DNA of 64,000 nucleotides, from positions 186,001 through 250,000 of the forward strand of contig MU008207.1 in NCBI GenBank assembly GCA_010909165.1, in the 5' to 3' direction. The notes beneath the pieces are model-generated. The model saw only the letters and a list, made by a program, of their open reading frames with translations. It was not told the DNA's origin and searched no databases. A program made the position numbers and the translations under genes. Below are positions 1,963 through 42,010 of the stretch, one piece after another (position 1 is the stretch's first letter; each line of letters begins with the position of its first letter). This DNA comes from Anthoceros angustus. Its lineage: Eukaryota > Plantae > Anthocerotophyta.

Positions 1963-4629
1963 TCAGTGACGATCTCCACATGAACAAACGCCATCCGAAA
2001 AGCGGTGCACTCGGTGTGCGTCTCTGACTATAATATGTCGCTGCTCAAGGCGGGACATGACCTTGGTGCTACTATGGCAGTCATTGCACATTCGAAGATT
2101 TTTATTGACCAGCAGAGGTGTGCCATGCGGAGTGTTGAGCAGACCGTAGGCCAAGGCAAGTTTCTCGGCGTGGCCGCACAGAGTATCTTCCTTCTCCTGC
2201 TCAGACACTGCCCTGAGAACCAACTCAGTTCGCGGCACATGCCCTCCTTCTTCCTTCAGCCTTAAGTTGACGCTCCTGGCCTTGGCCGAGATGTCAGTCC
2301 TCTCCTCTCCCACCGTGAACTCATGCACCCTGTTGTGCACTTCGATGCATGCCTTGGCCGGCTTCTTCCAGGCACCAGCAGCCTTTCTCAGCGCTTCTAT
2401 TCTGTCTACCTCAGCCCATCTTCCGGCACTTGCGTAGATGCTGCCCAACAAGACATAGGCAGAGGCACTCTCAGGTTCCAGTTCAACAACACGGTCGAAA
2501 CACCGCCTTCCCCGCTCTACATCACCGTGACCTTTGCAGGCGGTCAGCAGAGATGTCCAGCCCACCACGTCTTCCCCACCCGGCATACTCTGCAGCATAC
2601 TTTCTGCCTCATCCAGATGGCCCGAGCGGCCAAGGAGATCAATCATGCAGCTATAGTGGGAAGCAGTGGGCACGATGCCATGCTTCTCCACCATGCTGCT
2701 GAAATACTGCTTGCCCTGGAGCACTAGACCTGCATGACTGCACGCCACAAGAAGACAGAGGTATGTGGTGTCGTTAGGTGGACAGCCTTGTTGGCACATC
2801 TCCTCAAAATACTGCACCGCTCTTTCACCATCGCTGTGCTGAGCGCAGCCATTGAGCAGAGCGTTCCACGTAACCACATCCCTGTTGGGCAACATGTCGA
2901 ACACCTGCCGAGCATCCTCCAAGCTCCCGCATTTGGCATACGTGTCCACAAGGCCACTGCCAATAAACACATCGGCTTCCAGCCCTTGTTCCCTGATGCG
3001 GGCATGGAGCTCCTTGGCCTGCTGCACGGCTCCAGCATTGGCACATGCATGAAGGAGGCACATGTATGAAACACGATTGGGTGAACACGTGCCCTCTTCC
3101 ACCATGCTCTCATACAGAGCAAGAGCTTCTCCCCCAAACCCCTGCTGCGAGTATCCTGCCATGATGGTGTTCCATGTCACAATGTCCCTGGCAGGCAAGC
3201 CGTCAAAAACCCTGCGAGCATCATCCAGGCCCCCACACTTGGCATACATGTCCACAAGAGCATTACCCACCGACAGGTCATCTTGTAGGCCTGTGTCACG
3301 AATCTGTGCGTGCAACTGCTGCCCCTGAAGAAGATCTCCGGCACTGGCACATGCTTGAAGGAGGCACACAAAGGTGACAGGGTTAGCCGGGGGGGACATG
3401 GTGCGGTACAGAGCAAGAGCTTCGTGGCCAAGGCCATGCTGTGCATATCCTGAAAGCATGGCCGTCCATGTCACCACATCTCTGGAAGGCAATGCGTCGA
3501 ACACCTTCCGGGCATCCTCCAAGCTGCTGCACTTGGCATACATGTTCACCAGGCTGCTGCCCACGGAGACATCCCACTCCAGCCCTCTTTCACGTACCTG
3601 TGCATGCAGCAGCTTCCCCTGATGCAGCGCACTGGCCCCCACAGCCGCACACGCTTTCAACAGGCACACGAACGAAACCGAGTCTGCCAGCAGCCCTGCT
3701 TCTCCTTGCTGCTGCACACCCTGTGCGTACAGAGCGAGCGCCTCTCGACCCAATCCCTGTTGCACATACGCAGCGATCATGGCAGTCCATGTCACCTTGC
3801 TTCTGCTTCCAGTGGGCAGACTGTCAAACACATTCCGGGCGTCGTCGAGGCTCCCGCACTTGGCATACATGTGCAACAAGCTGTTGGCCACGAAAGTGTT
3901 GGGCCTCACCGAGCTTGCCAGAATGTGCCCATGGACATCCTTCCCTGCCTCCAGATCCCCGGCTGCCGCACACGCCTTCAGGACAGCCACGAAGATGTGG
4001 TTGTCTGGCCTGGCACCGGACTCCCGCATCCGCCGATACAAGCAGACGGCCTGAGCAGGGTGCCCGTTGTGGGCATGCGCCAGGATGATGGAGGACCACA
4101 TGTGGGCGGTGGGAGCCGGCACCTTGCTGAAGACCCCGACCGCCTCCTCCAATTTGCCATGCCCGGCATACATGCCGATGATGTGGGTGGCCAAGAATGC
4201 ATCGGACTCGAACCCGCTTCTCACAGCCAGGGAGTGAAGGCGCCGGCCGGAGGCCAAATCACGTCCTGCGATGCATCTCTTGAGGACGCGGAACAGTAGG
4301 GAGGTGGTGATGTCACACCCCTGTTGCACCAGCCCATGCAGAGCTTCCACGGCCTCGCTCACCTCACACCTCTCCAGCAGCAGCATGGGATCCGTGACAT
4401 TCCCCCACATCTCTTGTTTCCTCCACCCAACATGTTCCTCCACCTCCACCACTCTGGAGGCCGCTGTTGCCGGCCATGAACGGCTCCAAGACACGAATCC
4501 CAGCTGCTGCTGCCTACAATGTCTGTCCTCTCTGTTTGGCAACACCCTTCGAAAGACAGCACTTGGCGACTCTAAACTGCTGGCCACCGCTGGCTGCCCG
4601 ACGACGGAGCTTTGCAGATGCAACGCCAT
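1963..4629 (-). CDS. PLS-class PPR protein with E1/E2 and intact DYW:KP domain ending DRH (candidate U-to-C organellar editing factor)
   Basis: Single-exon ORF (longest form to 4692; ATG at 4629, MALHLQ, is the likelier start). P-L-S repeats, KP box WKKPAKACIEV, HAEKLALAYG, KNLRMCNDCH, terminal CSCGDRH*. Confidence 0.95.
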   Translation of the reverse strand: MALHLQSSVVGQPAVASSLESPSAVFRRVLPNREDRHCRQQQLGFVSWSRSWPATAASRVVEVEEHVGWRKQEMWGNVTDPMLLLERCEVSEAVEALHGLVQQGCDITTSLLFRVLKRCIAGRDLASGRRLHSLAVRSGFESDAFLATHIIGMYAGHGKLEEAVGVFSKVPAPTAHMWSSIILAHAHNGHPAQAVCLYRRMRESGARPDNHIFVAVLKACAAAGDLEAGKDVHGHILASSVRPNTFVANSLLHMYAKCGSLDDARNVFDSLPTGSRSKVTWTAMIAAYVQQGLGREALALYAQGVQQQGEAGLLADSVSFVCLLKACAAVGASALHQGKLLHAQVRERGLEWDVSVGSSLVNMYAKCSSLEDARKVFDALPSRDVVTWTAMLSGYAQHGLGHEALALYRTMSPPANPVTFVCLLQACASAGDLLQGQQLHAQIRDTGLQDDLSVGNALVDMYAKCGGLDDARRVFDGLPARDIVTWNTIMAGYSQQGFGGEALALYESMVEEGTCSPNRVSYMCLLHACANAGAVQQAKELHARIREQGLEADVFIGSGLVDTYAKCGSLEDARQVFDMLPNRDVVTWNALLNGCAQHSDGERAVQYFEEMCQQGCPPNDTTYLCLLVACSHAGLVLQGKQYFSSMVEKHGIVPTASHYSCMIDLLGRSGHLDEAESMLQSMPGGEDVVGWTSLLTACKGHGDVERGRRCFDRVVELEPESASAYVLLGSIYASAGRWAEVDRIEALRKAAGAWKKPAKACIEVHNRVHEFTVGEERTDISAKARSVNLRLKEEGGHVPRTELVLRAVSEQEKEDTLCGHAEKLALAYGLLNTPHGTPLLVNKNLRMCNDCHSSTKVMSRLEQRHIIVRDAHRVHRFSDGVCSCGDRH

Positions 4630-6365
4630 GCGCCTGCCTCGGCCTCCGCCTTTGGCTTCGGCTTCGGCTTCGGCTTCGAAAGCGTGGATCAATGAGGGTT
4701 GTCCAGGGACATATCATGCTGCCATGCAGCGAACGCTCTCCCTTCCTCCCAAAGCAACTGCACACAAATCGCGCGCGGGTTCCTTCAAGCTTGGTTCCTC
4801 CAGATTACCTCCATTCCTGATTTTGCCGTTTTCTTTCCTGATGAAATGTCCATGGACCTTTATGTGGATCAATGAGGGTTGTGCATCGAGCGTGCCGCAA
4901 GTTTGCGAAACTCAGAGCATCATTGGAGCGGGCAACGAGAGTCCGACAACTATACATACATATGTTGTTTATGAGTGAACGCGCTGCTTCAAGATTAGAC
5001 TTTCACCAAAATCACTACATATGTATATTTATGGGCAAAATAAGATAGTGAATTGTCGGTTGCTGTTATTTTATATCAAGGGTCCGTTATAAAATGGATT
5101 CCACATCCTTTTACTTTGGATTTGTTGCTGGGATTGGTGAATGATGGATAGCTTCCGCGAGCTACATACAATGTGCACATGTGGTTAGTTGGCCATGCGC
5201 TAGTCAGACATAAACACACAGGTTAGGCAATAGGAGACTCATCCTAGGATTTCCCCCTCTCATAATTTGTAACGTCATTGCCCAACATGCTCAGATAACA
5301 ACATTCAAGAAAGGGGCAGGGGGGGGCGGGAGTAAATTTATGATGTGTAGAGTCACGTTGTTGAGCAACCCTAAAATGTTCCTCATTTTCAGAGCTTCAT
5401 CCTCGGACATCTTCAACCACTGCCAGTAGTTATCACACTCCTCATACCACTTTCAGTAGATCGAATCCTTCTTCAAGCGCCACATAAAGGCTCAATCAAA
5501 GTAAACTAGTTTACATACTCTCTAAACCTCCCAGACTCCCTCAACATAATCAATCATGGAATCAAATCAGCATGGTTGGTAGGACTCAGAGTATCAAAAC
5601 AGGTGCCATCGATTTATCTTAAAGTCTTCTAGACTAGCCCTAATTTGGTGTAACCAGATATGGGTTTGGATGCATCGTGGCTAACTCTTTTGACAAGCTT
5701 GAGTCCACTCAAACCTATATAGGCTCTTAGAATCATAGTAAGGGGCCTATACAGAGGTTCAAAATTTTCAATGAGGCACCAACCATGATGCCTATCGCAA
5801 TAGCCTAGCCACATTGCACCTCCTTTTAGTTCTTGGACTCAAATGTGAGGATCATACTGGGATAGCAAGTGTCTATGAGCCATGACAAGATGGTGGAGAG
5901 TGAAAGCACAAAGACTGCTAGCATACTTGGAAAGGATGTTAGCTCTATAGATTTCTATGTAGTAACCTTTAACATATTAAACTTAGAGGTTGACTCAAAT
6001 AACAGCTAAGGGTTACATTTCTTAGATGCCTCGGGAGCACCAAATTTGCTCAAAGGAAAATATGCGAATCAAGAATGATGTCTTTTTAGATGAGAGACAC
6101 TCAAAATCTCACATGTAACAGTCAGTGAATAATAAATATAAAAAATGATAGACGTAAACAGTATAAATAAAATATAGTAAATAGGTAAGAAGTATGCATT
6201 CTAATGGAGGACTTGCTTGACCAAGTAGGGCCCAAGTTGCCACCTTGGCTTTAGCCTTGCTCTGACCTCCTTCTTCATTTGGCTCCCTCCTCCTTCATCT
6301 AACGCCGCATGTTAAGTTTGAGCACCTAGTTTGCTAGTGGCAACTCAAAATCCAACCTACTCTCA

Positions 6366-9728: not shown

Positions 9729-9975
9729 TTATAAAGTCTGCATGTCGCCCTCCACGTTGTGGCAATCAAAAGAGACCCGCAAATTTTTCACAAAGAATAT
9801 GGGGGTCGCCTCGGGTGTGCTCTTGAGGGCACATGCGATAGCCACTTGTTCCCTGTGCCCGCACAAATAATCGCCCTTTCTATCGTCAGATGTGTCCGCC
9901 TTCGAAGAGTCAAAATGTGGAACATCTCCTTCTGTCTTCGTTTCGAAGATCACCTGCTTCAGACTAGCTTGACGC
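9729..9975 (-). pseudogene. Eroded DYW domain in a shifted frame behind the WW-box gene
   Basis: LCGHREQVAIACALKSTPEATPIFFVKNLRVSFDCHN aligns to [33 protein letters not shown]. The first Cys of CxxC is lost, there is no DYW tail, and it is out of frame with ORF 9964-13503. Confidence 0.8.
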
Positions 9976-12900
9976 TTGAAACTGGGGATGCTTCTCATCC
10001 CCAACCAAAAAACTATGCACCTCGTTGTCTGTCCACCAGCACTGACCTGGCTGCTTCCATGCCCTGATTTGTCTCCGCAGCGTCTGCATCTTCTCTGCTT
10101 GCTCCCACATCTGGGCACCAGTGTAAATGTTTGACATCAACACATAGGCTGCGGCATCTTTCTTGTCTAATTTCACTGCTTCATTGAAAGCAAGGTTCCC
10201 CACCTCCACGTCACCCCACTTTCCACACGCACCCAACAGAGTGTGCCAGATTGTCGCATTGGGGGACACAGGCATTGTCCTTACTAAACCTAGTGCCTCA
10301 TCCAAGTGTCCTGCGCGACCGAGGAGATCCACCATGCATGCGTAGTGCTTCTCAGTGGGTGTGATGCCATACTGTTTACTCATAGCTACAAAGTACTCCC
10401 GCCCCTTGTTAACAAGACCTGCATGGCTGCACACTGTTAGTACACTAAGGAATGTGATGCTGTCTGGGAACATGCCATCTTCTCCCATTCTCTGAACCAG
10501 GTCAAGGACCACTGCACTGTCACCTTGACAGGCGTAGCTTGCAATTAGCGCATTCCAGGGGACTATGCCCCTTTCCGGCAAGGCATTAAACACACACTGT
10601 GCATCGTGCGTGCTCCCACACTTTCCATACATGTTAATCAAACTGCCAGCTACACACAAATCAGATTGAAGCCCTTGTTCTACAATCTGCGCATGTAGCT
10701 GCCTACCCAAATGTAGAGCTGCCACATTTGCACATGCTTGTAGAAGGCACACAAATGTCACGGAATCTGGTTCAGCAGTGCCCTCTCCTTGCATAGCACT
10801 GTAGAGACGAAGGGCTTCCAGCCCCATTCCCTGCTGGGAATACCCTGCTATCATGGCATTCCATGTCACCACATTTTTTTGACCAAGACCGTCGAACACC
10901 ATCTGCGCATCATTCAAGCTGCCACATTTTGCATACATGTTGACCAAACTGTTGGCTACAAACACATCAGCTTGATGTCCTCGTTCCTTGATTTGCTCAT
11001 GGAGTTGCTTTCCCTTCTCTAATGCTGAGATGCCCACACTGGCACATGCCTGCAGGAGGCAGACGAATGTCAAGGAATCGGGTACAGCTATGCCTTCTTG
11101 TTGCATGGCACTGTAGAGATTAAGAGCATCCTGCCCCATACCCTGCTGGGAATACCCTGCTATCATAGCAGTCCACGTCACCACATCTTTTTGACCAAGT
11201 CCGTCAAACACTCTCTGAGCCTCATCCAAGCTGCCACACTTTGCATACATATTCACCAAACTGCTGGCTACAAACACGTCACTTTCATGTCCTCGTTCCC
11301 TGATGTCCACGTGAAGATGCTTCCCCTGCTCCAACGCCAGGGTGCCCATACTTGCACATGCCTGTAGGAGGCAGACGAATGTCACAGAATCAGGAATAGC
11401 AATGCCACCTTCTTGCATAGCAGTGTACAGATGAAGGGCTTCATGCCCCATTCCCTGGTGGGAATACCCTGCTATCATGGCATTCCATGTCACCACATGT
11501 TTTTGACCAAGTCCGTCAAACACCCTCTGCGCGTCTTCCAAACTGCCACACTTTGCATACATGTTTATCAAACTGCTGGCTACATACACATCAGCTTGAA
11601 GTCCTCGTTCTCTTATCTGAGTATGCAGCTCCTTCGCCTGCTCCAAAGCCGAGGTGCCCAAACTTGCACATGCCTGCAGGAGGCACACAAATGTCACAGG
11701 ATTGGGTACGGCAATTCCTTCATCTTGCATAGCCCTGTAGAGACGAAGGGATTTCAAACCCATACCCTGCTCGGTATACCCTGCAATCATGGCGGTCCAT
11801 GAAACCACATCCTTGTGACCAATTCCGTCAAAAACTCTCAGTGCATCTTCCAAGCTGCCACACTTTGCATACATGTTCACTAAACTGTTGGCCACAGACA
11901 CATCAGCTTGATGTCCTTGTTTTTTAATTTGTGTATGAAGCTGCTTTCCCTTCTCCAACGCTGCGGTCCCCACACTTGCACATGCCTGCAGGAGGCACAT
12001 GAATGTCACAGAATCCGGTACCGCTATGCCCTCTTCTTGCATAGCACTGTAGAGATGAAGCGCTGCCTGCCCCATACCCTGCTGGGAATACCCTGCTATC
12101 ATGGTAGTCCATGTCACGACATTCTTTTGACCTAGTCCGTCAAACACTCTCTGAGCCTCGTCCAATCTGCCACATTTTGCATACATGTTCACCAAACTGT
12201 TGGCTACAAACACATCAGCTTGATATCCTCGTTCCTTGATTTGTGCATGAAGCCGCCCCCCCTTCTCCAATGCTGGGGCACCCACGCTTGCACATGCCTG
12301 CAGGAGGATGACGAATGTCACAGCATTGGGCACAGCCCGGCCTTCTTCTTGCATAGCGCTGTAAAGACAGAGGGCTTCCTGCCCCATGCCCTGCTGAGCA
12401 TACCCTGCAATCATGGCATTCCACGTCACAACATCTTTCCGACCAAGCCCAGCAAACACTCCTTGAGCGTCCTCCAAGCTGCCACACTTTGCATACATGT
12501 CCACCAAGGAATTGCAGACAAACAAATCAGGCTCCACACCAGCGGCCAACACATCAGCATGCACCTGCTGCCCAGACTTCAAGTCTGATCCCCTTGCACA
12601 CGCCTGAAGGGCTGCCACGAACACATGGCCATCCGGCTTCACACCAGACCTGCGCATCCGATGATACAGTTGTATGGCTTGCTTGTCGTGCCCATGTTTA
12701 ACATGGGCAGAAATTATGGAAGACCACATGAAGGCATCTGGCTGGGAAACAGCCTCAAACACATCCATCGCATCCTGCAAACTGCCATGAGAAGCATACA
12801 TTCGCAGGAGGTGGTTGCCCAGGAAAGTATCTGACCGATACCCCTTTTTCAGCGTCAACCCATGGACGCGCCTACCCAGAACAAGATCCTTCTTCGCTAC

Positions 12901-13503
12901 ACACGCCTTCAGGACAGCAAAAAAGAGAGATCTGGAAATAGAACGGTCTGCCTGCACCAGAAGTTCCAAAGCCTCAACAGCCTGGGCGAGACGGCCTTCA
13001 TGACATAGCTTGCTCACGGTTTCAGCCGTAACGCTCCCATCGTCTCCAGCAGGCCTGCGAGGATCAGGAAAGCCCGGTAAGTCCCTGTGGGTGGTGGCAA
13101 AACGACCCATCCGCATCCCCATCTGCATATCCATATCCATACCCATACCCATATCCAAAGCAGCCAGCTGCGCATCCACCCAAGCTGGCTTGTACAAGTT
13201 GTTTAAGCAGAGGAACTCTTGGGAGCGCCTGTGCCGGAAGTCGGGCCAACGGGGGGCATTGTTCTGTTGCCTGTTATCCCACCAAAGTGTGGGGTCCTGA
13301 AAGAATTGCCGCCACAAATTCTCCTGCCGACGACTCTCGCTGGAGGCCGGTTGGGTAGCCAGACATCCTGTTGCGCGGGCTGGATTTCTGGCCCAGCTGC
13401 TGCAACTTGCCGACGCAATCCTTGCAGCTTCTCTGTAGTCACCCAACGGGTGGCCTGGCCCTGTGCGGGTCTCCATGGCGACGGCCATGGCTCGCAGGAG
13501 CAC
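9964..13503 (-). CDS. PDF-motif / PLS-class PPR protein with E1/E2 and WW box, ending before the deaminase (E+ type)
   Basis: 1179-aa uninterrupted ORF with an N-terminal PDF-like motif, long P-L-S array, E motifs and C-terminal WKQPGQCWWTDNEVHSFLVGDEKHPQ. Confidence 0.94.
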   Translation of the reverse strand: MLLRAMAVAMETRTGPGHPLGDYREAARIASASCSSWARNPARATGCLATQPASSESRRQENLWRQFFQDPTLWWDNRQQNNAPRWPDFRHRRSQEFLCLNNLYKPAWVDAQLAALDMGMGMDMDMQMGMRMGRFATTHRDLPGFPDPRRPAGDDGSVTAETVSKLCHEGRLAQAVEALELLVQADRSISRSLFFAVLKACVAKKDLVLGRRVHGLTLKKGYRSDTFLGNHLLRMYASHGSLQDAMDVFEAVSQPDAFMWSSIISAHVKHGHDKQAIQLYHRMRRSGVKPDGHVFVAALQACARGSDLKSGQQVHADVLAAGVEPDLFVCNSLVDMYAKCGSLEDAQGVFAGLGRKDVVTWNAMIAGYAQQGMGQEALCLYSAMQEEGRAVPNAVTFVILLQACASVGAPALEKGGRLHAQIKERGYQADVFVANSLVNMYAKCGRLDEAQRVFDGLGQKNVVTWTTMIAGYSQQGMGQAALHLYSAMQEEGIAVPDSVTFMCLLQACASVGTAALEKGKQLHTQIKKQGHQADVSVANSLVNMYAKCGSLEDALRVFDGIGHKDVVSWTAMIAGYTEQGMGLKSLRLYRAMQDEGIAVPNPVTFVCLLQACASLGTSALEQAKELHTQIRERGLQADVYVASSLINMYAKCGSLEDAQRVFDGLGQKHVVTWNAMIAGYSHQGMGHEALHLYTAMQEGGIAIPDSVTFVCLLQACASMGTLALEQGKHLHVDIRERGHESDVFVASSLVNMYAKCGSLDEAQRVFDGLGQKDVVTWTAMIAGYSQQGMGQDALNLYSAMQQEGIAVPDSLTFVCLLQACASVGISALEKGKQLHEQIKERGHQADVFVANSLVNMYAKCGSLNDAQMVFDGLGQKNVVTWNAMIAGYSQQGMGLEALRLYSAMQGEGTAEPDSVTFVCLLQACANVAALHLGRQLHAQIVEQGLQSDLCVAGSLINMYGKCGSTHDAQCVFNALPERGIVPWNALIASYACQGDSAVVLDLVQRMGEDGMFPDSITFLSVLTVCSHAGLVNKGREYFVAMSKQYGITPTEKHYACMVDLLGRAGHLDEALGLVRTMPVSPNATIWHTLLGACGKWGDVEVGNLAFNEAVKLDKKDAAAYVLMSNIYTGAQMWEQAEKMQTLRRQIRAWKQPGQCWWTDNEVHSFLVGDEKHPQFQASS
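13153..13317 (-). other. OSB-type PDF motif (aa 63-117 of the 1179-aa PPR)
   Basis: LWRQFFQDPTLWWDNRQQNNAPRWPDFRHRRSQEFLCLNNLYKPAWVDAQLAALD matches the consensus I recall for the PDF motif of plant OSB proteins. Recognised by eye, no HMM run. Confidence 0.82.
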
Positions 13504-14614
13504 ACAATGAGGGCCTATGGATGCATGTCATCTAGCCAAAGATTGAGACGCAGAGAAACCAGTGGAAGTACGAAGCTTGTTTTGTGTTGTGGTAGATGGC
13601 TGTCGATCACCTCGCTTAGATGGTGAATGGGAACAAGCATGACACAAGAACTATGTTGTACACATGTACATCGATGGATATAGAACGGAGCTGTGGTGTG
13701 TTTTTGGAAGTGCCGGAGCTGGTCTGGACCGTGAAATTGCAACACATTGATGCCTCCTCGTTGTGCTGGCTGTTGCTGATTTTTGTGGATATGCACTTCG
13801 GCCAAAATATGATTTAATTGATAATTGAAATGATACTTGATTAATCCCAAGTTCGGAAATCTACTCAATTTCTAGAGATTGCAAGGACATGTCATGGTGT
13901 TCTTTCATTGCATGACTTTCATGACTCTCTATTATGATAGAATACTTAGTAACACATTTCAAGGTCTATATTTTGATAGAAGATTGCAATCTTCTATCAA
14001 AATATAGACTCTATCTACATGAGAGAAGAGTGTCTGATTTACATCGAGACGCATCTATTCGAAGACGAGGAAGAAGATTTCCAAGCTAAAAGTCAAACAG
14101 ACCTTTCAATCTTGTTTCATTCCCTTTCCCTTGTGGTGGAGCACTCACGCCGCCACCTTCAAATGCACACGTTGTGGAACACTCAAGAACTGAATAGAGT
14201 TGTCAAGGCCCAACTTTGCAATAGGAGCCCTTTCTTTTATATTTTCTAATTGCTTTGATATGAATAAGAAACTCTGGTCTTTGGATATATTCATTGTGGC
14301 TTAAAAGAGAAACAAACCTGTACATCAATTTTTAAAATCTATTGTTCATAATTACTTACACCAATCTACTTTTTCATGCTTAAATCTAGATCGTACCTCA
14401 TAGGCCTGGGCACATTGATTACAAGGATCCATAAAACTGAACCCAATGCAATATGATTGGGGTCAATTGTTCCTTGCCACATTTCTTGCCTCAGGACATT
14501 GTATCATCCATCTATTACATTGCTCCTATTAGCCGTCTATCCTCGAAGAATTGAGCAGATGTCCTTTCATGCATATAGTTTCTCCTAATATGCTCCGTAT
14601 GTTATCAGAAAAAT

Positions 14615-14775
14615 CATGGTTCTAGGGATCTAATTGCGGCCAATGTGCATGGTCTAGGGATCTAATTGCGGCCAATGTCCATGGTCTAGGGATCTAATTG
14701 CGGCCAATGTGCATGGTCTAGGGATCTAATTGCGGCCAATATGTATGATCTAGGATTCTAATTGTGGCCAATATG
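14615..14775. repeat. 32-bp minisatellite x5 (CATGGTCTAGGGATCTAATTGCGGCCAATGTG)
   Basis: Five head-to-tail units with no spacers; the last unit is diverged. Confidence 0.92.
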
Positions 14776-15300: not shown

Positions 15301-15554
15301 TCAAGGTTTTGAGTACCTATGTGTTGTTGTTGTTGTTGGTGGTGATTTGTGGGCTGCTTGTTTTTTTTTCGAGTCCCTCCGTGGGTAAAGGAGGTAGTGC
15401 CCTGCGACTGTTTGCTCCTGTTTAGCGGAGGCGGGGGTAGTGGCCCGAATCCGACAAGTTGACCGGGTGCACACCGGCGGCCAGTCAAAGAGCACGACTG
15501 GGGACCGGGGCCGGGGCTGGGGCCGTGGCCGGGGTCGGGAAACGGGACTGGGAG

Positions 15555-15800
15555 ACCCGGAGCCAGAGCTAGAGCCAGAGGCAAGAGCCGGAGCCGAGCC
15601 AGAGCCAGAGCCCAGCCGAGAGACGGGCCGGGCCAGGCCAGCCCACGGCAGAAGGAAATGCACACCACGATTCCACCATCTCCCTTGTTGCAACCTTAGC
15701 AAGCAGCAGCAGCTGTAGCAGGAGCAACAGTAGCTGTAGCAGCTGTAGCAGCTGTAGCAGCAGCAGCAGCAGCAGCAGCAGCAAGCGTCATCTGCAGCGG
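15555..15800. repeat. GC-rich microsatellites (GAGCCA)n and (CAG)n/(CTGTAGCAG)n upstream of SERK
   Basis: Read directly from the sequence. Confidence 0.85.
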
Positions 15801-16125
15801 CCGCAACTGCAACCGCAGCGCACGAGCGGGTGGCCCGGTCCATCGTCATCCGATCAGCTTCCTTCCCACCAGAATGCGAGCTCCTGCAGGCTGCACTGCG
15901 CGCGGATGGTATGAGGAAGCGCAGGCGAGGCGACCCGGCTGGTGATGCCGCAGCCCTGGCGCGTCCGTGACCGCCATCTGCTGCTCCAGGGATCGCGCAC
16001 CGCACCGCAGCGCAGCGTAGTGCAGGGCAGGGTAGTGCAAGTGCCAGTGCAAGTGCTAGTACAGGGCCGGGCCAGCAGGCTGCCTGGCTGCGCCTGCCTC
16101 ACAGTCCTGGATCTGTAGGGATCAC

Positions 16126-20035: not shown

Positions 20036-22716
20036 TCAAGGCACCCCCTTTTCACACGAACATAGGCCGTCTTTGAAGCAGTGGACATGGTGTGCATCCC
20101 TAACTATGATCTCTCGCTGTTCAATCCGTGATATGAGCTTCGTGCCGCCGTGACAATGGTCACACATTCGAAGGTTCTTTGTGACTGTCAACGTTGTACC
20201 CTGAGGTGTGTTCAGGAGACCGAATGCCAGAGCTAGTTTCTCTGCATGCCCACACAAGGCATCATCAGAAGCTGCCACTGCTTCACCCTCCTTCTTGCTC
20301 CACAAGAAGCTGCTTGTGTCGGCTTTTATCTGCAAATTGAGACCCTTGAGCCTGGAAGAAAGATCTTCCCTCCTCTCCCCCACACTGAACTCGTGCAGTG
20401 TGCCATCCACTTGGATCACGGCCCTCGCAGGCTTCTTCTGACCGCCAGAACATGTGAGCAAGGTTGTGATGTGATCCACATCATCCCACCTCCCAGCTTC
20501 TGCATAAATGCTTGACATGAGAGCATAGCCAGCAGCTCCTTGAGGTTCCAACTTGACCAGGCGATCAAAGGCGCGCCTTGCCATGTCCACACTACCATAC
20601 TTCCTGCAGGCAGTCAGCAAACATGTCCATGCCACATTATCGGCATCCAATGGCCTGGATTGCAGCACACTTTCTGCCTCACTCAACCGGCCTGCACGAG
20701 CCAGCAGATCAACCACGCAAGTGTAATGCTCGGGTGCAGGGTGGATCCCATGCTCTCCTGTCATGCTGGTGAAGATCCGCTGGCCCTCATCCACCATGCC
20801 AGCACGACTGCAGGCATTCAAAAGCGACATGAATGTGGCAGCATTGGGCCTCACACCCGCTTGTTGCATGCGATGAAAGCAGGTCACCGCCGATATCCAA
20901 CTGTTGTGCTGGGCATAGCCGTTTATGAGAGCTGTCCATGTCACCACATTTCGGGTGGACAGTCTGTCAAACACAGCTTGGGCATCCACCAGGCTCCCAC
21001 ATTTGGCATATGTGTCCACCAACGTGTTTCCAACACACGCATTGCTTTCCAGGCCCTGCTCTAGGATCTGATCATGAACCTGCTTTGCCTCTCGAATGTC
21101 TCCCAGATTGCCACATGCTTTGAGGACACTCACGAATGTGAAACCATTTGGAGATACGCCACCCTCTTGTTGCATTCTGGAATACAGCTCTAGGGCTTCC
21201 TCGTTGAGCCCATGCTGTACATATCCTGCAATCACGGAGGTCCACATCACAACATCCTTGCACCACGAAGTGTCAAACACCTTGCGTGCATCCTGCAGGC
21301 TCCCGCACTTGGCATAAGTATCCATAAGGATGCTTCTGAGGAAAGCATCCGACCCTATTCCTTTTCCCAGAATGTGGCCATGAATCCACTTCACCTCCTC
21401 AAGGCTTCCCATGTTGCCACACGCTTTAAGCAGGCTCAGAAATGTGATTCTGTCTGGCACCACACCATCCACCTCCATTTCTGCATACAGTCCAAGAGCT
21501 TCCTGATCCAGCCCATGGCCAGCGTATCCCGCCACCATCGCATTCCATGCCACCACACTTCTGGGCCACAACCTGTCAAAGACTGTGCGTGCATCATCCA
21601 CGCTTCCACATTTTGCATACATATCCACCAAGGTGCTGCCCACAAACACATCTGCTTCATGTCCGCTTTCCAGGATGTCAGCATGAATGCGCTTACCTTC
21701 CTGGATGGCGCCGACACTGCCACAGGCTTTCAGTATGGATGCGAAAGTGACCTTGTCTGGTATAATGCCAGCTCGCTGCATGCTCCCATAAAGTTCAATG
21801 GCCTCATGACCCCGACCCTGCTGAGCATATCCGGTGATCATAATGCTCCACGTCATCAAATCTCTGGCTGGCAATGTGTTGAACACTGTCCGAGCACTGC
21901 TCAGACTTCTACATTTAACATACATGTCTACCAGGGCATTTCCCACAAACACATTTGACTGGAGCCCGCTGTTGGTGAGTTGAGCATGAACCAACTGGCC
22001 TGATGCCAAGTCTGATGCATGTGCACACGCTTTTAGAACAGCAACAAACATGTGAGCATCGGGCTTGACATAAGACTGATGCAGCATCTGCTTATACAGC
22101 TTGATACCATTTGCTGCTTGTCCATGGTCGGCATTCGCTGAGATCATTGCTGTCCAGACAAACCTACTGGGAGCCACCAGCCTACTGAACAATTGGTTGG
22201 CCTCCAGCAAACTTCCTTGAGTGGCATACATGCGGATGATGTGGCTAGCTAGATATATCTCATGCCCACTTCTCACAGCGAGGGCATGCACACGCCTTCC
22301 CAGGTCAACATCTTTCCTCGCAATGCTCTCCTTGAGAAGGTGTAGTAACCTGTCCAGTAAAACCTGGGAGTCCTGCACGCACCCCAGTCCCTGCAGGGCC
22401 TCATGGAGCTGTCCAGCATCACACAGCGTGCTCCAGGCTTTAGGATCCAGAATGGTGGTAGGTGACGACCTGAAGAGAAAAGTGGCATCCGTGATTTGAG
22501 CGAGTTGGGCATCATAACACCTAAAACCCCATGATCCTGATAAGCATACCTGACAGGTTCTTCCCGTGCTGCTCTGCCTTCAGCAACCGTGTGCACTGTG
22601 TGTGAAGGCAATGTGACTGTCTCTGTAAGCTCCCTCTTTGCCCCCTGATTCTGAAGGAGGTTTTGTGTCTGTGAGAATCCCCAACACTGCAACTGCAACG
22701 GCGGAGAAGCATCCAA
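20036..22716 (-). CDS. Two-exon PLS-class PPR protein with DYW:KP domain ending CSCEKGVP
   Basis: Model: complement(join(20036..22469,22550..22716)) with an 80-nt GT-AG intron at 22470-22549. Splicing joins MDASPP...EEPVR to SSPTTILDPKAWSTLCDAGQLHEAL in frame with the 780-aa ORF. Contains KKPARAVIQV, HAEKLALAFG and KNLRMCDHCH. Confidence 0.9.
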
Positions 22717-27717: not shown

Positions 27718-30700
27718 ATGGCCACAGTGTGGCAACCGGATCCGTTGTGGACCCAACAAGGTGGTGAGTGTACAAGGATTCTACGAGAAGCTCCCACTGA
27801 CCTCACCTTATGGAGCCAACCGCTTGGAAACATCCAAGCCTGCAGGTGCAGCAGTGTACGGAACCCAGCACTTCGACTACTTCCGAGAAAATTTGTGGGT
27901 GGGGAAGGATTTTCCAGCAATGGTCGTCGCGAGGAGCAGGAGCGCTTGTGGCAACAATTTTTTCTGGATCCTACCATGTGGTGGGACAACAGGCAAGATA
28001 AGAAGAGTTCCCGTTCCCCTGACTTCCGGCGGAAGGGGTCCAGCGGTGAGGTCCTATGGTTAAACAGCATGCTCAAGCCAGCTTGGGTAGATGAGCAGCT
28101 TCTTTCTTTGGATGTGAGGATGGGTCATGGTGGTAGCTGTCCTTCCAAGTCGAGTTCTTGGGATAAGCCTGATGCTAATCGGCGTGAAGGTTCGGGTATG
28201 GGCGTCGTGACGGCTGTGACCGTGAGCATGTTATGTCAACAGGGGAAGCTTACTGAGGCAGTTGGAGCCCTGGAATCTCTCGCGCAGACAGGCTCTGGTA
28301 TTTCTCAGTCTCTGTTTTACACTGTGCTAAAACTGTGTACAGCTAAGAAGGATTTGGTTGTGGGGCGACGAGTTCATGATCTCACTGTCAAACTTGGGTA
28401 CGAGTCGAATGCATACTTGGGAAACCACATCTTGCGCATGTATGCATGTGGAGGTAGGCTACAGGAGGCCTTGGATGTGTTCACCAGGGTAGGCAAACCA
28501 GATGCGTTCATGTGGTTTTCCATAATCTCCGCACATGCTAAACATGGGAAACCTAACGAGGCCATACAACTGTACCATGAGATGCGTCGGTCAGGCGTGA
28601 AGGCGGATGGACATGTCTTTGCAGCTGCCCTTCAAGCATGTGCATTTGCCACCGACTTGGAGTGTGGGAGAAAAGTGCACTGTGATGTGTTGCACAGTGG
28701 CATTCCACTTAATTTGTTTGTTGGCACCTCCCTGGTGGACATGTATGCAAAATGTGGGGAACTTGAAGATGCACGTACGGTTTTTGACAGCTTGGTCACA
28801 AAAGATGTGGTGACATGGACGTCCCTGCTTGCTGGGTATGCAAATCATGGGTTCGGCCACGAGGCGCTTGTTCTGTACGGACAAATGCAGACGGAGGGCC
28901 TGATTGTGGCTGATCTTTTTACTTTTTCTTGCCTTCTCAAGGCCTGTGCAAGTGCTGGTGCCTTACAGAAGGGCAGGCAGCTGCACTTCAGATTGTGGAA
29001 ACAGGACACCTGACAACAAGCTTGTGGGCACCTGCCTGGTGGACATGTATGCAAAATGTGGCGAACTGGAAGATGCACGCCAGGTTTTGACAGCTTGGCC
29101 ACAAAGGATGTGGTGACATGGACGGCCCTGATAGCTGGGTATGCAAATCATGGGTTTGACACAGGCGCTTGTTCTGTACGGACAAATGCAGACGGAGGGC
29201 CTGATTGTGGCTGATCTTTTTACTTTTTCTTGCCTTCTCAAGGCCTGTGCAAGTGCTGGTGCCTTACAGAAGGGCAGGGAGCTGCACTCACAGATTGTGA
29301 AAAGAGGACAGCTGCATGACATGGTGTTGGGCAACGGCCTGGTGGACATGTATGCGAAATGTGGTGAACTGAAAGATGCACGCCAGGTTTTTGACAGCTT
29401 GGGCAGAAAGGATGTGGTGACATGGACAACCCTGATTGCTGGCTATGCACAGCAAGGGCTCGCCCAGGAGGCTCTTGTTCTGTATGGACAAATGGAGGAG
29501 GAGGGCCTGATTTTGGCTAACCATGTTACTTTTGCTTGCCTTCTGAAGGCCTGTGCAAGCACTGGTGCCAGAAGGGCAGGCAGCTGCACTCCCAGATTGT
29601 CGAAAGAGGTCAGCTGAACAACATAGTGTTGGGCAATTGCCTGGTAGACATGTATGCAAAATGTGGTGAACTGAAAGATGCACGCCAGGTTTTTGACAGC
29701 TTGCCTAGAAAGGATGTGGTGACATGGACAGCCCTGCTTGCTGGGTATGCACAGCAAGGGCTCGGCCAAGAGGCGCTTGTTCTGTACGGACAAATGGAGC
29801 AAGAGGTCTTAATTTTGGCTAACGATGCTACTTTTGCTTGCCTTCTGAAGGCCTGTGCAAGCACTGGTTCCTTACAGAGGGGCAGGCAGCTGCACTCACA
29901 AATCGTGGACAGAGGACTGCTAGATAACATAATGGTTGGTACCGGCTTGGTGGACATGTATGCTAAATGTGGCGAAATGGAAGATGCACGCAGGGTTTTT
30001 GATAGCTTGGCCACGAAGAATGTGGTAACATGGACGGCCCTCATAGCTGGGTATGCAAAACGTGGCGAACTGGAATGTGCACGCCAGGTTTTTGACAGCT
30101 TGGCCACAAAGGATGTGGTGATATGGAATACACTGATTGCTGGGTATGCAGATCAAGGGCTGGGTCAAGAGGCGCTTCTTCTGTATGGACAAATGCAACA
30201 GGAGGGCCTGATTGTGGCTGACCATGTTACCTTAGCTTGCCTTCTGAAGGCCTGTGCAAGCGCTGGTGCCTTACAGAAGGGCAGGCAGCTGCACTTCCAG
30301 ATTGTGGAAACAGGACACCTAGACAACAAGCTTGTGGGCACCTGCTTAGTGGACATGTATGCAAAGTGTGGCGAGCTGGAAGATGCGCGCAAGGTTTTTG
30401 AGACCTTGGCCACAAAGGATGTGGTGACATGGACGGCCCTGATTGGCGGGTTTGGTGCTTGTGATGAAGGTCACAATGCACTAGCTTGTTTTGAGGAGAT
30501 GTTAGTCGCTGGTATTCAGCCTGATGATGCTACTTTTACTTGCCTTTTAGCAGCATGCAGTCATGAGGGACTCGTGAATGAGGGCCGTAAATACTTTGAT
30601 TCCATGCTCGAACGGCATGGCATCAAACCTACTATTGAGCATTACAATTGCATGATTGATCTTCTTGGGCGTGCAGGCCATTTAGATGAGGCTGAGAACA

Positions 30701-31335
30701 TGCTTTTGTCATGTGAGAGCCAAAACAATATTGTGGGGTTGACGTCTTTGCTGAACGCCTGCAAAAGTCACGGGGATATTGAGAGGGCGACACGGTGTTT
30801 TGAGAGTCTGGTTAGTCTGGAGCCTCAGAGTGCATCCGCATATGTGCTCATGGCCAATGCCTATGCGGATGGAGGAAGATGGACCGATGTAGACAGGATT
30901 GAAACACAGAGAAGGGTAGCAAGAGCTAATAAGAAACCTGCAGTGGCGGGTATTGAGGTGAAGGAGCAGGTACACACATTTGTGGTAGGAGAAAGCACAG
31001 ATGACATTGCGCTCAAGGTAGAGAGCACGAATGCGCGGCTGAAGCAGGAAGGGGGACATGTACCGCAGACAAAGTTGGTATTGACGCCATTGTCTGAGAA
31101 GGAAAAGGAAGACCTGCTTTGCGGGCATGCTGAGAAGCTAGCTCTCGCGTTTGGTCTCTTGAACACTCCGAGAGGCACGCCTCTGGTGGTAACGAAGAAT
31201 CTGCGCATGTGCAGTGACTGCCACAGTTCCACAGAGATCATGTCAAGGGTCGAAAAAAGAGACATTGTTGTGAGGGATGGGTACCGTGTGCATCGATTCG
31301 CGGCTGGTTGTTGCAGTTGTAAGGGTCGACCGTGA
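27718..31335 (+). CDS. PDF-motif / PLS / E1-E2 / DYW:KP protein ending GRP; frameshifts at ~28990-29010, ~29155 and ~29570 (pseudogene or consensus error)
   Basis: The 5' ORF 27718-29013 has the PDF motif and first PPR motifs. The 3' ORF 29536-31335 ends NKKPAVAGIEV...HAEKLALAFG...KNLRMCSDCH...CCSCKGRP*. The breaks are short deletions relative to neighbouring repeat units. Confidence 0.85.
27946..28113 (+). other. OSB-type PDF motif
   Basis: LWQQFFLDPTMWWDNRQDKKSSRSPDFRRKGSSGEVLWLNSMLKPAWVDEQLLSLD, in frame with the downstream PPR motifs. Confidence 0.85.
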
Positions 31336-35834: not shown

Positions 35835-38800
35835 ATGGCCACAGTCTGGAAACCAGACCCGTTTTGGACCCAACAAATTGGTGGAGCTCCCGATCACCTC
35901 GTAGTCTTCGGGAGTCATCCAGCGATGGTCGTCGCCAGGAGCAGGACCACTTGTGGCAACAATTTTTTCTGGCCCCTACTATGTGGTGGGACAACAGACG
36001 AGATAAGAAGAGCTCCCGTTCGCCTGACTTCCGGCAGAAGGGGTCCGGCGAGGTCCTGTGGTAAGCAGCATGCTCAAGCCAGCTTGGGTTGATGAGCAGC
36101 TCGTTTCTTTGGATATGCAGATGGGTCATGGTGCCTCTCCTTCCAAGTCCAGCTCTCCTGATAAGCCTGAGCCTAGCAGGCCTGCAGGATTGGAGATGAG
36201 CGTCGTAACGGCTGTAACCGTGAGCACATTATGCCAGCAGGGGAAGCTTGCTGAGGCAGTTGGAGCCCTGGAATCTCTGGGGCAGCCAAACTCTGGTATT
36301 TCTCAGTCTGTGTTCTACACTGTGCTAAAGCTGTGTGCAGCCAAGAAGGATCTCGTAGTGGGGCGACGGGTTCATGACCTCGTGGTCAAACTTGGGTACG
36401 AGTCGGATGCATACTTTGGAAACCATATCTTGCGCATGTATGCATGTGGAGGTAGGCTGCAGGAGGCCATGGATGTGTTCACCAGGGTGGGAAAACCAAA
36501 TGCCTTCATATGGTTTTCCATTATCTCTGCACATGCCAAGCATGGGAAACTCAATGAAGCCATACAACTGTACCATGAGGTGCGTAGGTCAGGAGTGAAG
36601 GCGGATGCTCACGTCTTTGTAGCTGCCCTTCAAGCTTGTGCATTTGCCGCCGACTTGGAATCTGGCAGAGAAGTGCACTGTGATGTGTTGCAAAGTCGGA
36701 TTCCTCCCAACTTGTTTGTTGGAAACTGCCTGGTGGACATGTAATGTGGCGAACTGGAAGATGCACGCCGGGGCTTTGACAGCTTGACCACAAAGGATGT
36801 GGTGACATGGGCGGCCCTGATTGGTGGGTATGCACAGCAAGGGCTCGGCCAAGAGGCGCTGGTACTGTATGGACAAATGGAGCAAGACGGCCTAATTTTG
36901 GCTGACCGTGTTACTTTTTCTTGCCTTCTGAAGGCCTGTGCAAGCACTGGTGACTTGCAGAAGGGCATGCACCTGCACTCACGCATCATGGAAGAAGGCC
37001 TGTGCAAGCACTGGTTCCTTACAGAGGGGCAGGCAGCTGCACTCACAAATTGTGGGAACTGAAGATGCACGGTTTTGACAGCTTGGTCACAAAGATGTGG
37101 TGACATGGACGTCCCTGATTGCTGGGTATGCAAATCATGGGTTTGACACAGGCGCTTGTTCTGTATGGACAAATGGAGGAGGGCCTGATTGTGGCTGATC
37201 TTTTTACTTTTCTTGCCTTCTGAAGGCCTGTGCAAGGCTGGTGCCTTACAGAAGGGCAGGCAGCTGCACTCACAGATTGTGAAAGAGGACAGCTGCATGA
37301 CATGGTGTTGGGCAACTGCCTGGTGGACATGTATGCAAAATGTGGTGAACTGGAAGATGCACGCCAGGTTTTGACAGCTTGGCAAAGGATGTGGTGACAT
37401 GGACAGCCCTGATTGCTGGGTATGCACAGCAAGGGCTCGGCCAAGAGGCTCTTGTTCTGTATGGACAAATGGAGGAGGGCCTGATTTTGGCTAACCATGT
37501 TACTTTTGCTTGCCTTCTGAAGGCCTGTGCAAGCACTGGTGCCAGAAGGGCAGGCAGCTGCACTCCCAGATTGTCGAAAGAGGACTGCTGGATACAACAT
37601 AGTGTTGGGCAACTGCCTGGTGGACATGTATGCAAAATGTGGTGAACTGGAAGATGCACGCCAGGTTTTGACAGCTTGCCAGAAAGGATGTGGTGACATG
37701 GACAGCCCTGATTGCTGGGTATGCACAGCAAGGCTCGGCCAAGAGGCGCTTGTTCTGTATGGACAAATGGAGCAAGAGGGTCATTTTGGCTAACGATGTA
37801 CTTTTGCTTGCCTTCTGAAGGCCTGTGCAAGCACTGGTTCCTTACAGAGGGGCAGGCAGCTGCACTCACAAATTGTGGAAAGGGGACTGCTAGACATTCG
37901 ACAACTTGGCCACAAAAAGTGTGGTGACATGGAATGCCCTGATTGCTGGATATACAGATCAAGGGCTGGGTCACGAGGCGCTTCTTCTGTATGGAGAAAT
38001 GGAACAGGAGGGCCTGATTATGGCTAATGATGTTACTTTTGCTTGCCTTCTGAAGGCCTGTGCAAGCACTGGTGCCTTACAAAGAGGCAGGCAGCTGCAC
38101 TCACATACTGTCGAAAGGGGACTGCTAGGTACCATACTTGTTGGCACCTGCCTGGGACATGTATGCAAAATGTGGCGATGTGGGCACTGCACGCCAGGTT
38201 TTTGACAGCTTGGCCACCAAGGATGTGGTGACATGGACGACCCTGATATCTGGGTATGGTGCTTGTGATGAAGGGCACAACGCACTAGCTTGTTTTGAGG
38301 AGATGTTAGTTGCTGGTATCCAGCCTAATGATGCTACGTTCACTTGCCTTTTAGAAGCATGCAGTTATGGAGGACTGTTGGATGAGGGTCGTATGCACTT
38401 TGGGTCCATGGCTGAACAGCATGGTATCAAACCTACTGCTGAGCACTACAATTGCATGAATGATCTTCTTGGGCGTGCAGGCCATTTAGATGAGGCTGAG
38501 AACATGCTTTTGTCATGTGAGGGCCAGAGTAATGTTGTGGGATTGACGTCTTTGCTGAATTCCTGCAAAAGTCACGGGGATATTGAGAGAGCGAGACGTT
38601 GTTTTGAGAGTCTGGTTAGTCTGGAGCCTCAGAGTGCATCCGCGTATGTGCTCATGGCCAATGCCTATGCAATGCAGGTAGGTGGACTGACGTAGGGAGG
38701 ATTGAAAAACAGAGAATGTCAGCAAGAGCTAGTCAGAAACCTGCTGTGGCGGGTATTGAGGTTAAGGATCAGGTACATACATTTGTAGTGGGAGATACGA

Positions 38801-40189: not shown

Positions 40190-42010
40190 GTTACCACCAT
40201 GGGCGAGTAACGCCTGAAACTGTGAGCAAGCTATGTCATGACGGCCATCTCGCTCAGGCTGTGGAGGCTTTGGAACTGGTGGTGCTAACACACCTTGCAT
40301 TTCAAATCCCTCTTCTGCACTATCCTGAAGAGATGTGCGGTCAGCAAGGATCTTGTGCTGGGTAGCCGCGTCCATGCTCTTACAGTGAAACAGGGTACCA
40401 GGTCAGACACGTTCCTGGGCAACCACGTCCTGCGGATGTATGCTTCTCATGGCAAGTTGCAGCACATGATGCATGTATTTGAAGGCCTGGCCGAACCGGA
40501 TGCCTTCACCTGGTCTGCCGTCATTTCTGCCCATGTTAGGCATCGACGAGACGAGCAGGCCATTCAACTGTATCAGCGAATGCGGACCACGTCCGTGTGA
40601 AGCCCGATGGGCATGTAATTGTGGCAGCCCTTCAGGCTTGTGCAAGGGCCTCGGACTTGGAAACTGGGCAGCAGGTGCATGCCGACGTGTTGGCCAGCGG
40701 CGTGGAGCCTGATCTGTTTGTTTGGGTGCGCGAATACGCAGTTACTCTAGGCTCGTCGCTGAACATCTGCATCTGCGCATGTACGGATCTGTTTCTATAT
40801 TGAAAGCAGCAGTAAATCCCTGCACAAGCTTCTGCTGCTTGAGCTGCGCTGGGAAGCCGGGTCCATCGTATGTCTTCTATTGAGGGCGGCCGTTCGATCA
40901 GCCATTGGAGTTGGCATTGTCGTTGGAGTACAACATCTAGGAGGCTCATCTGATCAGTGTGCGCGAGCGAGCGATGGCTGGCTGTGTGTGCTATGCCTGG
41001 AAGAGTCTCTTGCGCTGGTGGGACTCCAAAGAAGTGACCACCTATTGTTGGGCAAGCGCACAACCAAGTCGGGTGCGGTCGAAGTGGATGTTTCCTGTCT
41101 GGAGATGGCTCTTCCAGCGAGGGTGGTGGTGCTCGCTGCCAGGAGGAGCAGTGGGCACAGGCAACTCCAAGGAGTCCTCACACCCATTGAACAACTTGGG
41201 TGCATTCTCTGCCATGCCCGGCCTGCATGGGCGAGTAACGCCTGAAACTGTGAGCAAGCTATGTCATGACGGCCATCTCGCTCAGGCTGTGGAGGCTTTG
41301 GAACTGGTGGTGCTAACACACCCTTGCATTTCCAAATCCCTCTTCTGCACTATCCTGAAGAGATGTGCGGTCAGCAAGGATCTTGTGCTGGGTAGCCGCG
41401 TCCATGCTCTTACAGTGAAACAGGGGTACCGGTCAGACACGTTCCTGGGCAACCACGTCCTGCGGATGTATGCTTCTCATGGCAAGTTGCAGCACATGAT
41501 GCATGTATTTGAAGGCCTGGCCGAACCGGATGCCTTCACCTGGTCTGCCGTCATTTCTGCCCATGTTAGGCATCGACGAGACGAGCAGGCCATTCAACTG
41601 TATCAGCGAATGCGGACCACGTCCCGTGTGAAGCCCGATGGGCATGTAATTGTGGCAGCCCTTCAGGCTTGTGCAAGGGCCTCGGACTTGGAAACTGGGC
41701 AGCAGGTGCATGCCGACGTGTTGGCCAGCGGCGTGGAGCCTGATCTGTTTGTTTCAAGTTGCTTGGTTGCCATGTATGCCAAGTGTGGCAGCTTGGAGGA
41801 TGCTCAGGCCGTGTTTGATGCTCTTGGTGAAAAGAACGTGGTGACATGGACTGCCATGATAGCAGGATATGCCCAGCAGGGCAGGGGCCACCAAGCCCTT
41901 CACCTCTACACTGCAATGGAAGAAGGAGGCATGGCCGTACCCGATTCCATCACCTTTGTGTGCCTCCTGCAGGCATGTGCAAGTGTGGGAACCCCAGCTT
42001 TGGACAGAGG
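40190..42010 (+). pseudogene. Partial copies of WW-family PPR gene 'B' N-terminus (two starts, ~40190 and ~41220)
   Basis: Repeated VTPETVSKLCHDGHLAQAVEAL...MRTTSRVKPDGHV segments, truncated at microhomology junctions. Confidence 0.75.

Follow-up and report, generated by a model that had tools for sequence, protein, structure and literature searches.

Why would a gene for a PLS-class PPR protein begin with a domain that is best known from the OSB proteins? This question is raised by a locus of Anthoceros angustus (Anthocerotophyta) that lies in a stretch of 64,000 nucleotides (GenBank assembly GCA_010909165.1, contig MU008207.1, positions 186,001 to 250,000 of the forward strand). We refer to this whole stretch as the window, and all coordinates are given within it. 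On the minus strand, an open reading frame (ORF) of 1179 codons begins with a GTG codon at position 13503; its first ATG lies at 13488 and leaves 1174 codons. An earlier examination of the letters of this DNA, called here the sequence-only reading, had proposed that the ORF carries a PDF motif near its N-terminus, ahead of a PPR tract. Our analysis indicates that this segment encodes a genuine OSB-type PDF domain, as judged both by sequence and by predicted fold, and that the same N-terminal arrangement is present in mosses, lycophytes, and ferns.

An OSB-type PDF domain ahead of a PPR tract

The PDF motif was originally placed at positions 13153-13317, and the minus strand there does encode the segment from L58 to D112 when residues are counted from ATG 13488. 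The residue numbers initially assigned to it, 63-117, result from counting from GTG 13503, and the conserved block proves to be slightly longer, reaching position 13332. As in OSB1-4, the domain spans approximately 55-60 residues and carries the signature W..FF..P..WWDNR..K..P..PDF(K/R)H(K/R)....LW....P.WV...L.

A profile built from three PDF copies of the window was used with HMMER to search 1.84 billion representative proteins, and it matched 715 of these at E<=1e-3 and 216 at E<=1e-10. The best 150 of the 715 matches are mostly OSB-like. In addition, the domain at 13153-13332, hereafter copy A, scores 59.4 bits against a broad PDF profile derived from 323 public instances, which corresponds to the 15th percentile among full-length PDF instances. 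Copy A departs from the consensus at two near-invariant positions, with N replacing the K that follows WWDNR and C replacing the W of the LW pair. Elsewhere this K is conserved in 95-99% of instances and this W in 91-98%, in PPR-linked and OSB-type PDFs alike. Most of the near-invariant core (W, P, WWD.R, K, PDF, LW, P.W) is retained in copy A, with sixteen core positions other than these two unchanged.

AlphaFold2, supplied with an alignment of 112 rows, models the domain with a predicted local distance difference test score (pLDDT) of 90 as a helix, two short strands, and a second helix. In this model, the WWDNR and PDF residues are carried on the beta-hairpin between the two helices. When the model was compared by Foldseek with the Swiss-Prot models, only four significant matches were obtained, and these are the PDF regions of Arabidopsis OSB1 (residues 180-243), OSB2 (303-357), OSB3 (372-425), and OSB4 (293-341). 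The matches have template modelling (TM) scores by query of 0.67-0.85, root-mean-square deviations of 0.8-1.4 Å, sequence identities of 30-35%, and a probability of 1.00, with predicted models on both sides of the comparison. Clusters of the AlphaFold database retrieved by Foldseek consist of OSB-named and unnamed plant proteins. Foldseek found no solved structural analogue of the fold in the PDB, and there is consequently no mechanistic template. The original identification of a true PDF domain, for which a structural comparison with OSB proteins had been suggested, therefore holds by profile score, by the breadth of the protein matches, and by a fold match confined to OSB1-4.

Other types of searches are blind to this domain. 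Pfam has no model that matches the PDF motif, and its models detect nothing in the first 123 residues of the window protein. Word-indexed protein searches with the N-terminal region of the window protein, or of its Selaginella homologue, returned no match, which reflects a limit of sensitivity and not absence. A feature search of the ESM Atlas with residues 50-125 yielded only low-scoring phage clusters, which we regard as noise.

The window protein is not itself a member of the OSB family. Pfam gives no SSB/OB match, the PDF domain is N-terminal, and the AlphaFold model has no OB fold around it. Instead, a disordered presequence directly precedes the domain, and a likewise disordered linker of some 35-40 residues and then PPR helices follow it.

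Gene architecture and a lost DYW deaminase

The features of the gene, together with the other PDF copies of the window, are collected in Table 1. Tandem P, L, and S motifs are recognized by the Pfam models PPR_2 (7.9e-130) and PPR (2.3e-104), and the E1/E2 region by the E_motif model, which scores 45.7 bits over residues 1092-1151 against a cut-off of 27.3. The ORF ends in a PG-box-like segment, KQPGQCWW...HSFLVGDEKHPQ. This PG box is of the ordinary type, unlike the KP type that is encoded at 29536-31335. Directly after the PDF domain, an alternating Gly-Met/Asp-Met repeat (13104-13152, minus strand) with a hexanucleotide-like pattern forms part of the linker. The repeat is missing from a paralogous gene of the window that carries PDF copy B.

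When residues 1-330 were modelled by AlphaFold, pLDDT values fell below 50 at residues 1-45 (presequence) and 116-148 (linker), and rose above 90 at about residues 50-112 (PDF) and from about residue 150 onward (PPR helices). The model thus depicts the PDF domain as an independently folded bead, held on a flexible tether at the would-be mature N-terminus.

Table 1. Features of the PDF-PPR gene and further PDF copies in the window (residues counted from ATG 13488)
Feature	Coordinates	Strand	Residues	Remarks
5' leader	13489-13746	-		Five upstream ATGs with short upstream ORFs; X1 RNA contig 13165-13746
Presequence	13333-13488	-	1-52	Ala/Ser/Arg-rich, predicted disordered; putative organelle transit peptide
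PDF domain (copy A)	13153-13332	-	53-112	60 residues
Flexible linker	13033-13152	-	113-152	
PLS-class PPR array, then E1/E2	9967-13032	-	153-1174	
Stop codon	9964-9966	-		Directly after the E2 motif; covered by X1 RNA contigs 9834-10011 and 9992-10129 with 0 mismatches
DYW deaminase remnant	9732-9974	-		Out of frame (+1), just past the ORF stop
Paralogous PDF copy B	27934-28113	+		69.9 bits; 61% identical to copy A; on ORF 27718-29013
PDF copy with frame break inside the motif	35939-36114	+		Pattern and profile scans
PDF copy with broken upstream frame	46973-47137	+		62 bits
Degraded, frameshifted PDF copy	59494-59672	-		Pattern and profile scans

The 1174-residue ORF contains no in-frame DYW domain with the HxE and CxxCH zinc ligands. 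The DYW remnant located beyond its stop matches the Pfam DYW_deaminase model (44 bits, E 2e-11) over profile positions 2-60 of 93. It retains HxE, has lost the first Cys of CxDCH, and reaches a stop after about two thirds of the domain. The frameshift is not an assembly error, because RNA contigs of sequencing run X1 cover both the stop and the frameshift region without a mismatch. Judged from these sequence features, the gene formerly encoded a DYW domain but has become a PLS-E gene, which would make its product an E-type site-recognition factor. The sequence-only reading had called this an intact gene of 1179 residues. The ORF is indeed uninterrupted, but the gene is intact only up to its E2 motif, with a DYW portion that is frameshifted and decayed.

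Transcription, translation start, and selection

The X1 RNA contigs tile positions 9834-13746 and show no difference from the window. Over the motif and its surroundings, they comprise the contigs 12780-13029, 13026-13177, and 13165-13746. There is no X1 coverage at 13875-14700 or below 9834, and these silent flanks indicate that the contigs represent RNA rather than contaminating DNA. Since the contigs run over the PDF domain, ATG 13488, and a leader of approximately 258 nucleotides, all three must reside in an unspliced transcript. Continuity of RNA over 13000-13503 had been named as a check on the proposed fusion, and the contigs pass through this region and on to 13746.

Translation is predicted to begin at ATG 13488, in agreement with a reading frame that is conserved among related sequences. 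This codon has a strong context, with G at -3 and G at +4. One upstream ORF of 30 codons, which starts at ATG 13531, overlaps the main start, and eight in-frame ATGs are present in the Gly-Met/Asp-Met repeat just after the PDF domain.

Selection was assessed by the Nei-Gojobori method among copy A, copy B, and the intact gene of a relative (P0079, locus L001), with synonymous divergence (dS) partly saturated throughout. Non-synonymous divergence (dN) is 0.26-0.29 for the PDF domain (dN/dS, or omega, 0.17-0.38) and 0.29-0.33 for the first ~240 PPR codons (omega 0.16-0.20). By comparison, dN amounts to 1.0-1.4 for the presequence and 1.1-1.3 for the linker, where saturation of dS makes omega values unreliable. 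The PDF domain thus has a dN as low as that of the PPR segment and sits between flanks with values of at least 1.0, in agreement with the purifying selection that had been suggested for it. Moreover, the PPR/E body differs from the RNA contigs of relatives by 22 synonymous and 18 non-synonymous changes, where a ratio of about 1:3 would be expected without constraint. This excess of synonymous changes points to purifying selection on the PPR body as well.

PDF-PPR fusions in other land plants

PPR proteins make up 15 of the best 150 representatives among the 715 profile matches, and all 15 carry one to three N-terminal PDFs. Seed plants are absent from the organism-named members of these 15. 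The remaining 135 representatives are not PPR proteins and have a median length of 356 residues. In 125 of them, between one and 13 PDF copies end at the C-terminus, which is the OSB layout exemplified by a Sinapis protein with three C-terminal copies.

PDF-PPR proteins were found in Selaginella moellendorffii (XP_024517303), Diphasiastrum complanatum (KAJ7517632, KAJ7570437, and KAJ7231026), Adiantum (KAI5076972 and KAI5061374), Ceratopteris (KAH7429238), a Pteridium transcript, and Sphagnum compactum (CAM6033764). The last of these is a complete PDF-PLS-E-E+-DYW protein. KAJ7517632 has two PDFs and shares 45% identity with the window protein across 1023 residues. An alignment of 16 PDF-PPR N-termini reveals a variable presequence, a conserved PDF, a variable linker, and conserved first PPR helices, and the PDF is in frame with the PPRs in every homologue that is aligned.

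A tree of 92 PDF motifs requires four label changes to account for PPR linkage, versus about 20 when the labels are shuffled. The window copies fall into a clade of 13 motifs (SH-aLRT 96), all of which are PPR-linked once P0129 is counted as a PPR fragment. The tree is based on 59 columns, and its deeper branching is unresolved. These sequence comparisons suggest that the fusion is older than the divergence of mosses and vascular plants, or that it arose very few times. It does not derive from the local mosaic of the window described below, because Sphagnum, lycophytes, and ferns share the N-terminal PDF-PPR layout. The prediction that the fusion is no by-product of downstream rearrangement is thus supported by PLS-PPR proteins with an N-terminal PDF from all six of the genera named above.

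Some of the profile matches have unusual compositions. The proteins P0001 (Kingdonia, 13 PDF copies), P0002, P0003, P0008, and P0010 (9-11 copies) consist almost wholly of tandem PDFs, and most of them have no recognizable OB fold. The motif also occurs inside two otherwise unrelated long proteins, namely P0051 (a Coptis kinesin of 1526 residues) and P0030 (Striga, annotated as 'Interactor of constitutive active ROPs 2'). Genuine fusions and chimeric gene models are both conceivable here.

Further PDF copies and the surrounding mosaic

All six frames of the window were scanned with a PDF pattern and with the broad profile, and the motif was found only at the five places listed in Table 1. Copy B heads a KP-type gene (27718-31335) that is broken further on. 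The DRH, GVP, LL-type, 'B' and 'C' genes had been put forward as natural controls that are devoid of the motif, and the broad profile indeed finds no PDF at the DRH (1963-4692), GVP (20036-22378), and 23954-26668 genes.

At the DNA level, the module that encodes the first PPR (homologous to 12900-13069) has at least 15 copies in the window, scattered over 39492-61664. There are only four further homologous copies of the PDF segment of copy A, and the leader and presequence of the gene that starts at 13488 are unique within the window. The cluster can be described as a mosaic of duplicated 5' gene pieces, in which only five first-PPR modules are preceded by a PDF. Upstream of one PDF-less paralogue, positions 40959-41100 of the plus strand encode ...LLRWWDSKE..., which bears a faint likeness to WWDNR and produces no PDF profile match at E<1. 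A trinucleotide repeat gives a minus-strand ORF at 15301-16005 an extended stretch of Cys codons as well as Cys/Tyr/Ser repeats, and this ORF is probably non-coding, low-complexity DNA.

A proposed function and its alternatives

The interpretation that we favour, although we would give it no better than an even chance, is that the PDF domain serves as a tethered binder of single-stranded nucleic acid on a transcribed E-type PPR factor, by analogy with the OSB proteins. Once the protein has been imported and its presequence removed, the PDF would form the N-terminal end of the mature protein, where it would bind single strands on its flexible tether in a manner that is not sequence-specific. 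On RNA, a PPR array is oriented with its N-terminus facing the 5' end. For this reason, the PDF could hold RNA upstream of the PPR footprint, or it could hold single-stranded DNA (ssDNA) of the transcribing nucleoid as OSBs do. Either substrate would increase the local concentration of the factor and its dwell time on nascent transcripts. A separate protein would provide the deaminase in trans, as is the case for the E-type factors of flowering plants.

Precedents exist for these activities. According to reviews, the PDF motif alone enables AtOSB1 to bind ssDNA (PMC6963530), and both OSB1 and OSB2 prefer ssDNA over double-stranded DNA or RNA (PMC4166229). The recruitment of a DYW deaminase in trans by E-type PPR factors is described in two reports (PMC9522420, PMC7076377).

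Several observations weigh against a single-strand binder in this gene. Given that OSBs are reported to prefer ssDNA to RNA, binding of RNA by the PDF is an extrapolation. Copy A has N for K and C for W at near-invariant positions, and its score is no higher than the 15th percentile. In addition, among the RNA contigs of runs X2 and X3, which represent two other organisms diverged by ~4%, one contig joins position 13054 to 13216 and omits the intervening 161 nucleotides (13055-13215). In this contig, the PDF is thus missing its second half, the repeat is absent, and little of the linker is left. Since 161 is not divisible by three, the frame shifts, and the junction places the PPR frame in phase with an alternative upstream ORF (13203-13505, minus strand). 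The gap may reflect a deletion in these relatives, a paralogue, or a lineage-specific intron. We did not adopt an intron for the window gene itself, since the segment has the ends TT..AG and the mismatch-free matching run is unspliced. Furthermore, a gene that has lost its deaminase could be on its way to decay, and the five upstream ATGs together with the eight in-frame ATGs after the PDF make a PDF-less product possible.

One alternative is that the PDF is a module for protein-protein contact or oligomerization, which recruits OSBs, a DYW deaminase acting in trans, or other parts of the editosome. AtOSB2 is a tetramer (PMC6963530), a gene that has no deaminase of its own must recruit one, and domain fusions often mirror interactions, as has been argued for editing factors (PMC13386178). 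However, ssDNA binding is the sole activity reported for the PDF motif, and aromatic and basic residues (W, R, K, F, H) occupy its conserved positions, as expected of a face that binds single strands. The PDF is also found on factors that retain their own DYW domain (P0079, P0110). We therefore hold a contact module to be unlikely, though worth serious consideration.

Another explanation accepts the fusion as real for the family and regards the PDF of copy A as an inherited relic, relaxed or functionless, that decays along with the lost deaminase. The two replaced residues and the low score are consistent with decay, as are the frameshifted DYW remnant and the relatives' contigs that lack half of the motif and have a shifted frame. 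Also, omega between copies A and B is higher for the PDF (0.38) than for the PPR part (0.20). In contrast, the remnant of ~100 codons has already acquired both a frameshift and a stop, whereas the 1174 codons upstream remain open, a contrast that speaks for maintenance of the truncated gene. The dN of the PDF is as low as that of the PPRs between its fast-evolving flanks, the sixteen other core positions are unchanged, AlphaFold models the domain with confidence, and the gene is transcribed. On balance, a relic strikes us as a minority prospect.

It is quite improbable that the PDF is transcribed and yet excluded from the protein, either because translation starts at the ATGs of the Gly-Met repeat (13110-13152) or because the shortened form of the relatives is the functional one. 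The upstream ORFs of the leader, including the one that overlaps the main ATG, and the eight in-frame ATGs would permit such a product, and the form shorter by 161 nucleotides exists in two related organisms. However, this product would carry no targeting presequence at all, the upstream frame is open and conserved at the protein level with a strong context at ATG 13488, and an in-frame PDF is common to every PDF-PPR homologue. Finally, chance resemblance or a low-complexity artefact, which has only the short length of the motif in its favour, is refuted by the 59-bit match to an independent profile, the 216 proteins at E<=1e-10, and a fold match limited to OSB PDFs, and it retains virtually no probability.

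Relationship to known systems

In the OSB proteins, an OB-fold-like domain is followed by one to three C-terminal PDFs, whereas the window protein has a single N-terminal PDF before its PPR array. The order of its parts is that of the PDF-PPR proteins of other seedless plants, namely a presequence, one to three PDFs, a linker, PLS PPRs, an E region, and sometimes a DYW domain. Several of these differ from the window protein, either because their DYW domain is still in frame (Sphagnum P0110, Logan P0079) or because they carry more PDFs (two or three). The records that we examined for the seedless-plant proteins are filed as hypothetical or PPR proteins and do not name the PDF. The window protein also resembles the E-class PLS PPR factors of flowering plants, in that it combines a PLS array and E1/E2 with the absence of its own deaminase. 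Those factors, however, have no N-terminal PDF, and the DYW domain of the window gene was lost recently enough to leave a remnant.

Like the MORF/RIP, ORRM (RRM), and OZ proteins, the PDF represents an extra module, with a putative affinity for nucleic acids or proteins, that would assist PPR editing factors. Those proteins have folds unrelated to that of the PDF, and they act mostly in trans. Fusions among MORF/RIP, ORRM, OZ, and PPR modules have been catalogued in a kingdom-wide survey of editing factors (PMC13386178), which contains no occurrence of either PDF or OSB. A survey of OSB diversification retained only proteins with both an OB fold and a PDF (PMC13393729). This requirement and the absence of a PDF model from Pfam would hide the fusion from surveys, and the missing Pfam model probably explains why domain surveys have overlooked it. 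We found no publication that ties the PDF motif to PPR proteins, and the fusion is apparently undescribed; most subscription journals lay outside this search, which makes it weak evidence of novelty.

We also considered and rejected the idea that the PDF replaces MORF proteins in seedless plants. MORF homologues have been reported from ferns (PMC12561531), and the PDF is found on only a subset of PPR proteins.

Implications for organellar RNA editing

The usual picture of a PPR editing factor is that of a PPR tract followed by E and DYW domains, with the helpers MORF, ORRM, and OZ acting in trans. A conserved and folded N-terminal module that was borrowed from organellar DNA-maintenance proteins, and that has been kept from Sphagnum to ferns, adds a part to this model. 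The PDF occurs on factors of different deaminase classes, and copy A demonstrates that KP-type (U-to-C) genes are not its only carriers. Because copy A persists on a gene that is transcribed but no longer has a deaminase of its own, the role of the PDF does not appear to be tied to a deaminase in cis. We know of no engineered PPR editor that has been built with a PDF-like module. Thus, any effect of the PDF on the efficiency or specificity of editing would matter for engineered editors too, and the choice between ssDNA and RNA as its substrate is directly testable.

A broader and rather speculative proposal, which we consider doubtful at present, is that the PDF is a hitherto unrecognized cis-acting part of the organellar editosome in seedless land plants. 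By clamping single strands, it would fasten a subset of the PLS-PPR factors to the transcribing nucleoid. If so, this subset would include both C-to-U and U-to-C factors, whether or not they have a deaminase of their own, and RNA editing would be physically coupled to organellar DNA through a genome-maintenance module of the OSB proteins.

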